The notes under the pieces: generated by a model
Databases searched by the model: none
Told to the model about the DNA's origin: nothing
Seen by the model: only the letters and a program-made list of their open reading frames with translations
DNA from: Cyanophora paradoxa CCMP329
Lineage: Eukaryota; Plantae; Glaucophyta
DNA length: 64,000 nucleotides
Assembly (NCBI GenBank): GCA_004431415.1
Contig: QPMI01000701.1
Location: 1-64,000, forward strand
Direction: 5' to 3'
Shown here: in pieces, positions 17,912 through 52,911 of the stretch
How positions within the stretch are numbered: position 1 is the stretch's first letter
How the letters are laid out: each line of letters starts with the position of its first letter
Position numbers and translations under genes: made by a program

Positions 17912-19416
17912 TCAGAGGTCGTGGCGGGCGCCGGCGACGACGGCGTAGGCGAGCATGGGGTACACGAGGTCGACGCTGTGCGGCCCGTGCACCTCCACCC
18001 CCGTCAGCACCGCGTAGTCGCACGCCCCCCGCCCCCCGCCGTCGACGCCGCGATCAGGTGCTCCAGCAGCTCGCCCTGGGCCTCGGCGGCGGCGCGGGTG
18101 ATCTCGTCGAGGGCGGGGCGGGGGCGCCGGGGGGCGGGGCCCGAGGCGCTCGAAGACGAGCTGGGCGAGCAGCGACTCCTCGACGTCCTCGAGGTCCAGC
18201 GCCGGCCGCTCCTGGCCCCGCCCCGCCCCGCCTCGGTGCCCCGCCCCGACGCCCACGCGCCGCGGGCGCGCACGTTCATGAGGCCCTGCGCGTAGCGGGC
18301 CTGGATGGCGCAGAGGGCGCCGCAGGCGTGCGAGGGGCGGCAGCGGCCGGCGCGGGTGCAGGCGCCCACGGTGCCGTCCTCGCCCACCGCGACGTGCAGG
18401 AACGCGAAGAAGACGTACCGCTCCCGCCCGTCCCCCGCCTGCGCCCCGCCCCCGCCCCTCAGCCACCGTCGGGGGGCGAGTGGAGGGCGGGGGGCGGGGG
18501 GGCGGGCCAGCGGGGAGTGCCCCTCGGCGGCGGCGAAGGCGGTGATGCCGCCGGAGAGCAGCCCGCCGATGCCCGCGAGGCCCGACAGGTCGAACTGCAA
18601 ACGCCCACGCCTCACCCCCCGCGCCCCAGGGAGGCCCGCCCCCGGGGGCCGCGGCGGGGAGGGCGCACGGCGCCGGCCCCGCCGGGGGTTGTCCACGCCT
18701 CCTCGATCTTGCGGAAGAGGGGCTGGCAGAGCTCGTCGCGGCACAGGCAGATCACGGGTATGGACGTCTGCGAGGCCCGTCGGGCGAGGCGCCGGCGCAG
18801 GGCGGGGCGCGGCGTGCAGGGCGCGGGGCGGGCGGACCTGCCTGCAGAATCCGAAGGGGGCGAGCCGACGGACCGAGTTGCGCACAAACTCGTCGCGGGT
18901 CACGCAGCCGGGGTACAGCTCCCTCACGCGCTCCTCAAACGCCCTGCTTGCACCCCGGCTCGCTCCCAGGGGGCGGGGGGCGGGGGGCGGGGGGGCAGGG
19001 GGCGGGGAGTGGGCGGCGCGCGCGCACGGGATCGTGAGCAACTGGGGGCGAACGACAGAGAGCAGATGCTGGATGGGATTCGAACTGAAGGCTCTCTTGA
19101 CGGCGCGCACCGCCGCCTCCCGCGCCTGCCCCGGCAGCTGCTCGCGCCGCTCCGGCGGAATAGCCACGCAGGCGCACGATAACTCGATCAGCGGCGCCTG
19201 GGGTCGAAGCACGGCTTCCTGGGTCCCAGCGAAGAAAGCTCTCCGTCCGCCTCGGTGCTCTAGCGAGTTCGATGCCCTGTCCGGGGAGTGGCGGCCCGGT
19301 CGCATGTGCTGCGTACGCGTACACGCTGCGCTAGTCGTGTCTGATGCACGCTGCGCTAGCGCTGAAGAGCTCCATTGCGGCGCGCTGCAGCTACAGCTCG
19401 CTGAAAAGGCTTCCAT
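17912..19416 (-). CDS. LCIB/LCIC-family (theta-type) carbonic anhydrase-like protein, paralog 1, with transit peptide
   Basis: MEAF-type presequence. Motifs LYPG, ICLCRDELCQPL, FDLSGLAG, HSP, FLHVAVGEDGTVG, HACGAL and DYAVLTGVEVHGP. Confidence 0.9.
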
Positions 19417-47233: not shown

Positions 47234-47658
47234 CCCGCCCCGAGGGCCCCAGCTCCCCGGCGTCCCTCTCCTCCCGCCATCGTGCTCGGATCTTGTGTTC
47301 GTTTTCGTCACATGAACTGTACTTGATTCGTGGCCCCTCGACTTGTCTGCTGTACACCTCAAGCCGGCGCCATGCCCGCCGCCCCTCTCTCGGCCACGAG
47401 CCAGCTGGAGCAAACGGGGCGGGAATAATGAAGTACGCATTCGATTCACATAGTCTTACAACAACAGCAGCATCATGTCTGCACAGGCTCTCAAAATTGG
47501 TCATAAATACGCTTCATAACTAAAACTAGGGCAAGTGTTATGCAGGCACGCCCGGATCCCGTCTACCCAAGCTGCCGAGGGAGGAGCCTAGAGGCAACAT
47601 GAAACTGAACTGCACAGGAGAGCGCGGCGGCGCGCGCCGGCCGGCCGCGAGGAGAGGT

Positions 47659-49143
47659 TTACGCGAGGGTCTTCTTCTCGCCGTTGACGACGGCGTAGGC
47701 GCCGGTGGGGAAGATGTAGTCCGAGCCGCCGGGGCCGTGGATCTGGATGCCGGTGAAGACGGCGTAGTCGCAGTTCTTGCCCTTGGTCGACTTCTCGATG
47801 TAGCCCTGGAGGTACTCGGCCTGGGCCTCGGCGGCGGCCTGGGTGATCTCGGGGAGGCTCTTCTCGCCGCCGGCGCCGAGCTTGTCGAAGACGAGCTGGG
47901 CGAGGAGCGACTCCTCGAGGTCGCCGAAGTCAACCTCGGGGCGCTTGTCCATCTTGCCGTTCTTGTACCGGCCCTGGATCGCCACCAGCGCGCCGCACGC
48001 GTTGGACGGCGCAGCCCGGCCCACGCGGTTGCACGCCCCGATCGTCCCGTCCTCGCCGATGGCGATGTGCGGCGCCGCAATGAACACTGCGCGAGGCGGC
48101 TCAGCGACGCCGGCGGCTGCGAGGAGGGGCGCGCCAGGGGCACTGCGCACCGTACTTCTCCTTCTTGTCATCGCCGGTCTGGGGGGAGTGCGCCTCCGCC
48201 GCGCCGAACGCCGTCACACCCGCCGAAAGCATGCCGCCCATGCCCGCCAGGCCGGAGAGGTCGAACTGACCAGGGCGGAGAGTCAGCGCACAGTGCAGAG
48301 AGGCGCGGCGAGGGCACAGCGGGGCAGGCTCACCGCGCCGACGGCACCCTGGGCCCACGCGCCCTCGATCTTGCGGAAGAGGGGCTGGCAGAGCTCATCG
48401 CGGCACAGGCAGATGGCGGGGATGACGTTCTGCAGGGGGTAAGGGCCGGAACGGGGCGGGGCGGGGCGAGCGAGGGGCAGGGGCACCTTGCCGTTGAAGC
48501 CGAGGGGGTTCAGCTTCTTCTGGGTCTCCTTGATGAACGCCTCGCCGGTCACCGCGCCGGGGTAGAGCGCCTCGAGCTGCTCAGTGAAGGCCTTGGTCGC
48601 GGTGGCGGCGCTGCGCGGCGGGGCCGATCAGCGGGGAAGGCCGGCGCCAGGGCGGGGCGGGGCGGGGCGCACGCGAAGGCGGGCTTGGTCTTGACGGAGA
48701 GGAGGGCCTGGAGGGAGACGGCGGCCGCGGCGCCCATGACGGTACGGCGGCTGGTGGTCATCTTCTTCTCCTCGGCGACGGGCTGCGCGCGCCGGCCATC
48801 ATTAGCCATCGGTCCAGCAGCGAGGCGACGCGAGGCGAGGCTAGGACCGTCCGCTAGGCTCTAGCAAGGCTACGAGAGCAACGTACGCGCTCGCCTACGT
48901 GCGCGCGCGGTCGGCGGGGCGGCGAACCTTCTCGGCGGAGGCGGAGACCGAGAAGGAGGTGGAGGGGGCGGCGCGGGCGGCCTTCTTGGCGACGGCATCG
49001 CCGAAGAACGCCTTGTTCTGGACGCGCGCGGCGCAGCCGCAGGCCGGGCCATGGCCGCAGGGGGCCTTCACGCAGACGGCCGAGGCGGTGCTGACGGCCT
49101 GGCTGGCGCCGACGACGGGGGCGACGGTGGCGAACGCGTTCAT
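47659..49143 (-). CDS. LCIB/LCIC-family (theta-type) carbonic anhydrase, paralog 2, with bipartite transit peptide + Tat signal
   Basis: MNAFATVAPVV presequence, then SRRTVMGAAAAVSLQALLSVKTKPAFA. Motifs ICLCRDELCQPL, APHIAIGEDG, NACGAL and DYAVFTGIQIHGP. Confidence 0.93.
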
Positions 49144-49714
49144 GGTGCTGGCTGGGAGGGAGGCGGGAGGGCGGCGAACTTACTACACGACTGTCCGCCG
49201 GTTCTTCGCAGCTGCCGGGTCAACCTCGGTCCCCGTTGCGAACTGGCCCGCTGTTATAGGGTTCAAAAAAGTAATAGTGGGAGAAATTTTATTAAAGAAT
49301 GTCATTTCGAGGATGATGGAGCGATAAAGAGCTGCTGGGATAATGATAGTCATGATCACGGGGTGCCTCAAGGGGGCACCCCTACGGATCCCCTACGGCC
49401 ACCTGCACCCGATCGAGCGCGCGCGGCCGTACGCGTTCGCGTACGCGTGTACGTGTCACAGTGTCCCTGCGCGGCCGGCGCGGCAGCCGCGGCTATACGC
49501 GCTAGCTATAGCTGTAGCTTGCGGTGCACGTGCGGCCCATATGGCAAGAGTCCCGACTTCATCGATATCCAAGATTCCCAGATAGACGTTCTCCAGAGGC
49601 CGGAAGCGGTGGGCGGGGTCTCGAGCGAAGTCCTGCTATTCACTGAACCTACACTGTGACAGCTAGTCTAGATCTGCCTGGGTCCTGCGTAAGCTAGCGG
49701 GCGGCGGCGGGGCC

Positions 49715-51650
49715 TCATGTGTCGAACTCGCCGAGGGGCTCCGAGGCTGCCTCGATGGCGACGGTGCCCTCGAGCAGGGGCAGGTCCTCCTCCCCCTCGA
49801 AGTAGTACTCCGCGTACCCCGCCTCCGCCTCCGCCGCCGCCGCCGCCGCCTCCCCGCCCGCCGGAGTAACCGTCTCCGTCGGCGTGGTTTCGGTGGCAGG
49901 GGGGGTCTGGGCCGGAGGGGTAGTTTCGGGGGTGGTCTGGGTGGTGGGAGGGGTGGTGGTCTCGGGAGTCGTCGCGGGAGGGGTCTGGGAGGCGGGAGGG
50001 GCGTCGGAATCGCCGCTGCCGCTAGCGTCGGCGTCGGCCTCGTCGGTGTCGGCGTCGGGGGCGTTGGGGTCGGGGGTGAGGGCGCCGGTGGTGGCGTCGA
50101 AGGTGGATGTGATGTTCTCGTTGACCGCCTGGGGCACCACCTTGATGCCCTTGCCGTCCACGTTGTTCACGTAGCTGCGCGCGCGCGCCCAAGTCGGTCA
50201 GCGCGGGGCCGGGGAGGCGGGGCGGGGCGGGGCGGGGCGGGGCGGGCGTACTTGATGAGGTTGGTGGCGCAGGTGCCGGGGTTGGTGACGGTGGGCGTCT
50301 CGGCGCTGGCCGTCTTCTCGTCGAACTCGAGGCCCTGCACCTGGTACTCCTCCCACGACTTCTTCAGGTCCATCAGGAAGTTGCTCGCCCCCGCGGGGGC
50401 TGGCGGGAAGGCGATGACGGTCGGCACGCCCATCGTGCCCGTGTAGCCGATGTCGTGGAAAAAGGCGCCGGCCTCGGTGCTGCCCTGCTCGTGCACGATG
50501 TTGATGTCGATGCGGGCGATGACGACCTTGTCGGCCGCCGTCTTCTGTAGGTCGCACGCCGCCTTGTCCATCTCGGGGCCGAACATGCGGCAGAACTTGC
50601 AGTTCGCCTCGTCGGTCACCACGACGAGCACCGTCTTGTCCTTGCCAATGAGCTCCCGCGCCTCGGCCCACTTCATGCTCTTCGCGCACTGCTCCCGCTC
50701 GATGATCGCCCCCGCCACGATCCCCGTGTCCGCCGACGTCGCGTCCTTCGCCGTCTCGTCCGCCGTCACCGTGTTGCCCTTCGGCAGCACCACGTTGCCC
50801 TCCGCGTCCACCGTCGGCTCCGCCGCCGTCTGCTCGGCCGGCTGCGTCGTCTGCTCGGCCGGCTGCGTCGTCTGCTCGGCCGGCTGCGTCGTCTGCTCGG
50901 CCGGCGGCGTCGTCTGCTCGGCCGGCGGCGTCGTCTGCTCGGCCGGCGGCGTCGTCTGCTCGGCCGGCGGCGTCTGCTCGTCGGCGAACGCGAGCTCGCC
51001 GTCATCGTCGACCATCGCGACGGCCTCGTCCAGCTGGCTCGCCCCCGACGCCGAGAACTTCTGCGCCCAGCGCACGTCAGGGGGGCGAGTGGGGCGCCGG
51101 GGAAGGGCCCGGGCGCACGCTGCCGAGGCCTGCGACGAAGTTCGTGAACGCGTCCCCCGCGCTGCCGTCAGTAGTGCCTGTGTAGAAGACGTGCGTGCTC
51201 TTCGAGAAGCCGGTCTGGCCCTGCAGGTTCGGCGAGAACGCCACGATGGTCGGAGCCGACTCAATCTTCAGTTCGTTGATAATCTGCGGGCGTGCAGACG
51301 CTCAGCGCGACACGGCGGGTACCGCAGGCGCCCCCGGCAGGGCGCAATCGCACCGCCTGCAGCTCCGCAGCCTCCGCGTCCGTCCGGTCGGCGGTGATGT
51401 CGACAGGCACCTTGTAGAACTTTGTGCTGTCGCTGGCATACGAATTCGCAACACTGTTGTAGACGGGGTCGAAGCTTTGGCACTGCGCATCGGAGTCTTA
51501 GGAGCCGGCTCTTTAGTGGCGCGGCTGTCGAGCAGGACCGAGACGCACGAATCCGCAGTTATCCACGTCGCCAATGTTGGCGATAATGGTATCCTGCGTT
51601 CCGTCGAAGATCTTCGCCTTCAGATCCGCCCACGAGATTGTCTGGGCCAT
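49715..51650 (-). CDS. Protein with two thioredoxin-like domains (CGFC, CKFC) and Thr/Pro-rich linkers; may extend further upstream
   Basis: DNCGF|CQSFDPVY...SAPTIVAF; VVTDEANCKFCRMFGPEMDK..VVIARID..GVPTVIAFP. Confidence 0.75.
50826..50980. repeat. 21-bp coding minisatellite, about 7 copies, encoding PAEQTT(P/Q)
   Basis: cgtctgctcggccggc(g/t)gcgt repeated. Confidence 0.9.
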
Positions 51651-52720: not shown

Positions 52721-52871
52721 TCTGCGTGAAGGCCCCCTGCGGCCACGGCCCGGCCTGCAGCTGCGCCGCGCGCGTCCAGAACAAGGCGTTCTTCGGCGAT
52801 GCCGTCGCCAAGAAGGCCGCCCGCGCCGCCCCCTCCACCTCCTTCTCGGTCTTCGCCTCCGCCGAGAAGGT

Positions 52872-52879
<8 letters not shown>
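52721..52879 (+). pseudogene. Inverted near-identical copy of part of exon 1 (transit peptide) of LCIB paralog 2
   Basis: Reverse complement of 48918-49076 with 4 substitutions by my count. The 5' part (MNAF...) is missing; the splice donor is retained. Confidence 0.9.

Positions 52880-52911
<32 letters not shown>

Follow-up and report, generated by a model that had tools for sequence, protein, structure and literature searches.

In a 64,000-nucleotide stretch of the genome of the glaucophyte Cyanophora paradoxa CCMP329 (contig QPMI01000701.1, positions 1 to 64,000; hereafter the window), we found that the nuclear gene tig00021795_g23537, which runs on the minus strand from 49143 to 47659, encodes a member of the LCIB/theta-carbonic anhydrase family behind a leader of two parts. 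The first part is a predicted transit peptide for the muroplast (cyanelle), and the second, encoded complete on an exon of its own, is a segment of the twin-arginine translocation (Tat) type; this leader segment is a real feature of the gene. The reading that we prefer, and that we consider somewhat probable, is that the product is a signal-cleaved theta-carbonic anhydrase (theta-CA) carried into the thylakoid lumen by the Tat pathway.

The two-part leader and the gene that encodes it

All three regions of a Tat signal are present in the translation of exon 2 (PVAEEKK-MTTSRRTVMG..KTKPAF). The n-region, KMTTSRR, has a charge of +3, follows a short acidic spacer, and sets the arginine pair (RR) in an S/T-R-R-x-hydrophobic-hydrophobic context; the h-region is uncharged; and the basic c-region ends in a small-x-small site, with signal-peptidase cleavage predicted between A109 and A110. 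A preliminary description of this locus had proposed just such an arrangement, in which a separate exon after the transit peptide carries an RR motif, a hydrophobic core, basic residues of the Sec-avoidance kind and an AxA cleavage site, and each of these elements was recovered (TSRRTVMG, a core of 17 residues, and KTKPAFA). The span it had given for the signal, 48672-48783, does hold the RR peptide but is one base too long at each end, as the exon itself runs from 48782 to 48673, between an AG acceptor at 48784-48783 and a GT donor at 48672-48671. Codon 109 (Ala109), the last of exon 2, is split and is finished by base 48610, the first of exon 3. Four boundaries lie within about six residues of one another: exon 2 joins exon 3 in codon 109, the AxA cut is predicted after residue 109, the confidently folded part of the model begins at about residue 111, and the related bacterial proteins begin at K115-A-F.

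The six-frame translation of the GC-rich window was scanned with a strict Tat filter, consisting of the TatP-style pattern RR.[FGAVML][LITMVF], at least 13 uncharged residues, a Kyte-Doolittle (KD) hydropathy of at least 1.5, an AxA site and at most one proline. The exon 2 site was the one match in 127,996 residues, a count that is indicative only, since the filter was defined after the sequence had been seen.

The second leader domain also resembles the signals of lumen proteins from the same organism. The precursors of Cyanophora PsbU (..AQAEEKKGRREF..SPAAFA/YS, in outline AEEKKGRREF..PAAFA/, where the slash marks the cut) and of a PsbP-like protein (..SRRQAF..PTPAFA/L), both printed in Köhler 2015 Table S2, have in common with this leader a Phe-type transit peptide, an acidic/basic AEEKK spacer, the RR pair, an Ala-rich core and a (P)A(A)FA end. 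This likeness was judged by eye on the printed sequences and carries no alignment statistic, and the passenger proteins are unrelated.

Judged by its sequence, exon 1 is a standard Cyanophora (Phe-type muroplast) transit peptide. Its translation starts MNAF, which puts a Phe at position 4; it contains many Ala, Ser and Val residues, carries a net charge of +5, is of typical length, and holds a V-x-A motif at which stromal processing is predicted (V66-S-A68/S69). Köhler 2015 (PMC4510345) reports for this organism that transit peptides carry Phe N-terminally, are 63 residues long in the median, and couple Val at -3 of the cleavage site with Ala at -1. A similar stromal cleavage context is found in the Rieske precursor, whose N-terminus SAASDD.., mapped in the same study by terminal amine isotopic labelling of substrates (TAILS), follows TFSVSC (FSVSC/SAASDD).

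The gene model was built by hand, by reading the reverse complement of 49250..47550 for exons and splice sites, and comprises six exons and 362 codons (Table 1). All of its introns are GT-AG introns of 57-145 nt. Database searches were run exon by exon at first and later with P0001 (EukProt tig00021795_g23537.t1, 362 residues), which was retrieved by a HMMER scan with exon 6; this independent prediction agrees with the manual model in every exon. The 2012 gene model, as given in Köhler 2015 Table S2, differs from ours by one residue at the exon 5/6 junction and is identical at the junctions of exons 1, 2 and 3.

Table 1. Exons, intron 1 and signal regions of tig00021795_g23537, in window coordinates.
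Feature	Position	Strand	Content
Exon 1	48928..49143	minus	Codons 1-72; muroplast (cyanelle) transit peptide starting MNAF
Intron 1	48783..48927	minus	145 nt, GT-AG
Exon 2	48673..48782	minus	110 nt, codons 73-109; spacer PVAEEK and complete Tat-type signal
Twin-arginine codons R84-R85	48744..48749	minus	Context T-S-R-R-T-V-M-G; matches RR.[FGAVML][LITMVF]
h-region, residues 86-102	48693..48743	minus	17 uncharged residues; mean Kyte-Doolittle 1.69
c-region KTKPAFA (+2)	48673..48692	minus	Two Lys (Sec-avoidance type); A-F-A at -3 to -1
Exon 3	48487..48610	minus	Codons 110-150; predicted mature N-terminus AATATK and first domain helix
Exon 4	48334..48429	minus	Codons 151-182; CRDE motif, C159 at 48403-48405
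Exon 5	48151..48265	minus	Codons 183-220 and one base; LCIB_C_CA profile positions 54-79
Exon 6	47659..48086	minus	Codons 221-362 and TAA stop (47659-47661); H227 at 48067-48069, C251 at 47995-47997

Dual targeting by alternative splicing was considered and rejected. Because exon 2 is 110 nt long, skipping it shifts the reading frame, and retention of intron 1 runs into an in-frame TAG after 10 codons; the RR exon is thus unavoidable, and no stromal isoform can arise by bypassing it.

Several features of the surrounding DNA may be recorded here. Residues 24-37 of the transit peptide (49030-49074, minus strand) form an unusual Cys/His cluster, C-x4-C-x-H-x3-C-x-C (CVKAPCGHGPACGC), which is nearly unchanged in a duplicated fragment at 52721-52890. 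This fragment, 3.6 kb upstream of the gene and on the plus strand, is an inverted copy of 48907-49076 (171 nt, 96.5% identical) that covers codons 23-72, the 3' two-thirds of the transit-peptide exon, and runs 21 nt into intron 1. Around it is a short open reading frame (ORF) starting MRMRTRLCVKAP.., and the copy still terminates at a GT donor. No copies of exons 2-6 follow it, and no database protein that uses it was found; it is probably the relic of a local inverted duplication. Short introns of this gene and its neighbours (e.g., 48430-48486, 48611-48672, and 50195-50248) have (GGGGC)n / (GCCCC)n runs in common, which cause many short blastn cross-matches throughout the window. The upstream neighbour, at 50167-51264 on the minus strand, contains about seven tandem 21-nt repeats (~50820-50960) that encode (T)PPAEQT within a larger ORF.

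The catalytic domain and the history of the signal

The assignment to the LCIB/theta-CA family made in the preliminary description is borne out by profile, modelled structure and active-site residues. P0001 matches the Pfam family PF18599 (LCIB_C_CA) with 157.7 bits (cut-off 25; E 3.6e-46), the match spanning positions 1-222 of the 223 in the profile, and exons 4, 5, and 6 match positions 24-49, 54-79, and 83-222 in collinear order. An AlphaFold2 model based on 120 homologues gives residues 1-110 a predicted local distance difference test score (pLDDT) of less than 60, and from about residue 111 onward, up to residue 362, the score is 90 or more; the first helix lies at 115-124. Foldseek placed 6kfs, 5k5w, and 5b5y at the top of its matches (template modelling score 0.82-0.86, target-normalised), with classical beta-CAs far lower.

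The 120-sequence alignment shows no variation at C159, R160, H227, and C251 and a conservation of at least 90% at D161 and E162. C159 belongs to the CRDE motif, H227 to PHIAI and C251 to ACGAL, and they align with LCRDE, PHIAI, and ACGAL of Chlamydomonas LCIB (CrLCIB); we take them to be the putative zinc ligands, following the ligands reportedly described by Jin et al. 2016. In the model, residues from about 111 to 362 thus make up a complete LCIB/theta-CA fold with the conserved Cys-His-Cys and Asp, and enzyme activity is predicted. According to a 2026 review, LCIB acts as a carbonic anhydrase in yeast and Arabidopsis CA mutants (Kasili et al. 2023, as given there).

The closest solved relatives by sequence are CrLCIB (5k5w, E 3.9e-31) and LCIC (5b5x, E 1.1e-29), which also share the CRDE, PHIAI, and ACGAL motifs and are among the best structural matches. 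These two Chlamydomonas proteins are stromal, lie around the pyrenoid and have no export signal, whereas the Cyanophora protein has an RR signal on its own exon.

When the strict filter was applied upstream of the domain in 212 LCIB-family proteins, tig00021795_g23537 was the one that passed. Cyanophora has at least six LCIB paralogues, and it alone among them has the RR signal; N-terminal extensions of about 100 residues are also found on other Cyanophora paralogues. The nearest relatives by sequence outside Cyanophora are leaderless bacterial proteins of about 238 residues that start at the K115-A-F position. In the maximum-likelihood tree, the protein is sister to P0003 with a support of 98 in the Shimodaira-Hasegawa-like approximate likelihood ratio test (SH-aLRT); the two fall in a five-member clade of Cyanophora paralogues only (98), itself nested in a clade of 14 with other glaucophyte sequences (98). 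Since the signal is found on one of the Cyanophora paralogues, and this protein is nested in a glaucophyte clade, family comparison indicates that the RR signal was added to a single duplicate in this lineage. Inheritance of the signal from bacteria was rejected, as the bacterial relatives begin at the domain and the protein nests in the Cyanophora-only clade.

A donor of the leader was also sought. Residues 1-112, compared with 5.8 billion proteins, returned only tig00021795_g23537, so that no source of either leader exon was found, and a BLASTP comparison of the leader with the N-terminus of P0003 gave no meaningful match (E = 61).

A relaxed Tat scan of the family let through two euglenid LCIBs, P0128 from Euglena mutabilis and the related P0096. 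Both have SRRD, an uncharged core and an A-x-A site between the endoplasmic reticulum (ER) signal/transit region and the LCIB domain, and these segments are predicted lumen-targeting domains of independent origin, which suggests that theta-CAs may be lumenal in euglenids too. Unlike the Cyanophora leader, theirs is tripartite and serves a secondary green plastid, and the two proteins belong to a different clade.

The sister paralogue P0003 (tig00021795_g23525, 17915-19416, minus strand) lies 30 kb away in the window, and its annotation seems to be in error twice over. The model can be extended by 37 codons, up to an in-frame ATG at 19416, and then has a start, MEAF.., of the kind typical for transit peptides. 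In the stretch between two runs of G/C homopolymer (~18030-18140), the conserved LDEITRAAAEAQGELLEHLIAAS can be read only in another frame, and the annotated model has a Pro/Arg-rich stretch in its place, which implies either two compensating frame errors or real frameshifts. In its N-terminal part, P0003 has GGRRAFFAG, and the uncharged core is absent.

Location of the enzyme within the cyanelle

On the preferred, lumenal reading, the protein would be synthesised in the cytosol with its two-part leader, imported into the plastid, and cut by the stromal peptidase near A68/S69. This cut would expose the exon 2 signal, with TSRRTVMG, the weakly hydrophobic core of 17 residues and KTKPAFA, in which the c-region lysines would discourage use of Sec. 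The enzyme would fold and load its zinc in the stroma before Tat transport across the thylakoid membrane, and a lumenal signal peptidase would then cut AFA/AATATK to release an acidic enzyme (isoelectric point about 5.5) of about 26 kDa. The evidence in the literature for a thylakoid Tat pathway in cyanelles is indirect.

Published proteomics of isolated cyanelles establish that the LCIB protein is real, abundant and inside the plastid. The same sequence is entered in Köhler 2015 Table S2 (PMC4510345) as 'low-co2 inducible protein lcib', with an identifier ending in cds:10437. In intact cyanelles it amounted to 39.8 fmol on column, compared with a mean of 14 fmol for all proteins, and after a wash with 1% Triton X-100 to 33.6 fmol (normalised), a ratio of 0.84 (PMC4510345). 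The wash was aimed at removing the outer membrane and periplasm, and proteins were flagged 'putative periplasm' with a cut-off ratio of 0.5; the LCIB protein was not flagged. PsbU, cytochrome c6, and the PsbP-like protein all fall in the 'putative periplasm' class, which also contains obvious contaminants such as a Rab GTPase and a mitochondrial carrier, so depletion by Triton is not specific to the periplasm.

Proteins of known place behave in more than one way in the wash. The lumenal PsbU (0.26), the PsbP-like protein (0.10), and cytochrome c6 (0) were depleted, whereas PsbO (1.03), Ycf48 (1.41), two CYP38-like entries (0.59 and 2.56), the membrane-bound Rieske protein (1.0), and stromal chaperones (1.3-1.5) were retained. 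As the wash removes some lumenal proteins and keeps others, retention cannot separate lumen from stroma, and the ratio of 0.84 would suit a stromal protein, a lumenal one that is bound or oligomeric, or one tethered to a membrane.

Several observations weigh against a lumenal enzyme. The soluble lumenal proteins with similar signals (PsbU, the PsbP-like protein, and cytochrome c6) were depleted, and the LCIB protein was retained in the manner of stromal or membrane-bound proteins. The published tables of Köhler 2015 list no TAILS peptide of this protein. The isolated segment scored 12.8 bits (E 0.12) with the Pfam TAT_signal model (PF10518), below the cut-off of 22.7, and the Tat-signal models of NCBIfam gave no match to the leader. 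These curated Tat hidden Markov models are built from the N-terminal signals of bacteria, and for this reason their failure here counts for little. No orthologue with the RR signal was found in other glaucophytes among the sequences searched. In the MAFFT alignment, part of the h-region sits over a short LLxV/I (LLSV) motif of the paralogues that have no RR, and the exon 2 segment might go back to a normal extension of the N-terminus, although this overlap is too weak to call. Finally, the Rubisco body of Cyanophora is described as directly touching the stroma and without traversing thylakoids, and modelling of Chlamydomonas indicates that a lumenal CA needs to be confined to traversing membranes.

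A competing view is that the enzyme is stromal, with the RR/hydrophobic segment non-functional or a relic, and recaptures CO2 around the Rubisco body in the manner of LCIB/LCIC. The Triton retention, the sub-threshold Tat models, the alignment of part of the h-region to the motif of the paralogues, and the extensions of about 100 residues in those paralogues are all in keeping with it. It leaves aside the presence of all three Tat regions, the coincidence of the AxA site with the domain and exon boundary, and the fact that the strict filter gave no further match in some 128,000 six-frame residues; moreover, lumenal PsbO, Ycf48, and CYP38-like proteins survive the wash, so retention does not imply the stroma. 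We regard a stromal enzyme as rather unlikely.

Export across the inner envelope to the peptidoglycan periplasm, or to both periplasm and lumen, where the enzyme would convert CO2 and HCO3- into each other at the surface of the plastid, had been named as the alternative in the preliminary description and has lost ground. In its favour, the Sec translocase of cyanelles occurs in the inner envelope as well as in the thylakoids and cytochrome c6 is dually located; a dual location of Tat has been proposed in the literature as speculation; cyanobacterial Tat substrates reach the periplasm; and a chlorarachniophyte theta-CA is found in an intermembrane compartment. The ratio of 0.84 after 1% Triton, in cyanelles washed to be periplasm-free and against a cut-off of 0.5, makes a freely soluble periplasmic location unlikely, and the signal resembles those of lumenal photosystem II PsbU and the PsbP-like protein. 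Export to the periplasm, alone or together with the lumen, therefore seems improbable to us.

A further reading has the signal left uncleaved, so that, as in Rieske, it would serve as an N-terminal membrane anchor and hold the CA domain on the lumen side of the thylakoid. An uncharged stretch of 17 residues between RR and K would fit this, as would a retention like that of Rieske and PsbO. Against it, A-F-A preceded by Pro at -4 makes a good site for signal peptidase, and the core is short and weakly hydrophobic (KD 1.69), with Gly, Ser, and Gln; this is the least probable of these locations and one that we hardly expect.

Meaning for carbon concentration in glaucophytes

In the lumen, the enzyme would turn HCO3- into CO2 under acidic conditions, and this CO2 could diffuse to the central Rubisco body inside the concentric thylakoids. 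It could alternatively support photosystem II, a role suggested because the lumenal theta-CA of diatoms matters at high CO2 as well.

Other lineages are already known to have CAs in the lumen, both ones with Tat-type leaders and ones of the theta class. The closest parallel in leader design is Chlamydomonas CAH3, which has a bipartite leader composed of a stromal targeting domain and an RR lumen domain with a hydrophobic core and an A-x-A site (A-K-A). CAH3 is a zinc enzyme on the Tat/delta-pH route, the cia3 phenotype stems from two substitutions just after the RR, and its proposed role is to convert HCO3- to CO2 in the acidic lumen. It is an alpha-CA rather than a theta/LCIB protein, it has been characterised experimentally, whereas the Cyanophora protein is known as a prediction, and it works in thylakoid tubules that cross the pyrenoid, which Cyanophora does not have. 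Since no thylakoids run through the Cyanophora Rubisco body, the CAH3-like delivery model is not directly transferable; in hornworts, closely apposed membranes have been described.

The theta-CAs of diatoms (Phaeodactylum Pt43233/Pt-theta-CA1 and Thalassiosira Tp-theta-CA2) are likewise LCIB_C_CA proteins of the lumen with a role in photosynthesis and the CO2-concentrating mechanism (CCM). They reside in a secondary plastid, with an additional ER signal and thylakoids that penetrate the pyrenoid, and they are not among the close relatives in our tree, where the Cyanophora protein falls in the glaucophyte clade.

Cyanophora LCIB homologues are already known, and this very protein was listed, unremarked, as LCIB in the proteome table. 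No report of a glaucophyte CA with a lumen or Tat signal was found in the searchable literature. In recent reviews, the convergent core of pyrenoid mechanisms is a lumenal CA together with bicarbonate channels, and these reviews leave glaucophytes unmentioned.

Tentatively, and as a possibility more than an expectation, glaucophytes may operate a CCM of the pyrenoid type and not of the carboxysome type, in which a stromal LCIB was duplicated and gained a signal exon within the Cyanophora lineage, giving a Tat-exported lumenal theta-CA in thylakoids that surround the Rubisco body and never penetrate it. Whether that body is carboxysome-like or pyrenoid-like is a long-standing question, and the gene provides a concrete and abundant candidate for a lumenal CA in the third primary-plastid lineage, whose plastid keeps a peptidoglycan wall and has no pyrenoid-traversing thylakoids. 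It would also be a clean example of a duplicated enzyme retargeted by a one-exon signal whose end coincides with the predicted cleavage site. If this model is true, theta-CAs would have been redirected to the lumen independently in glaucophytes, in diatoms and, as predicted here, in euglenids.

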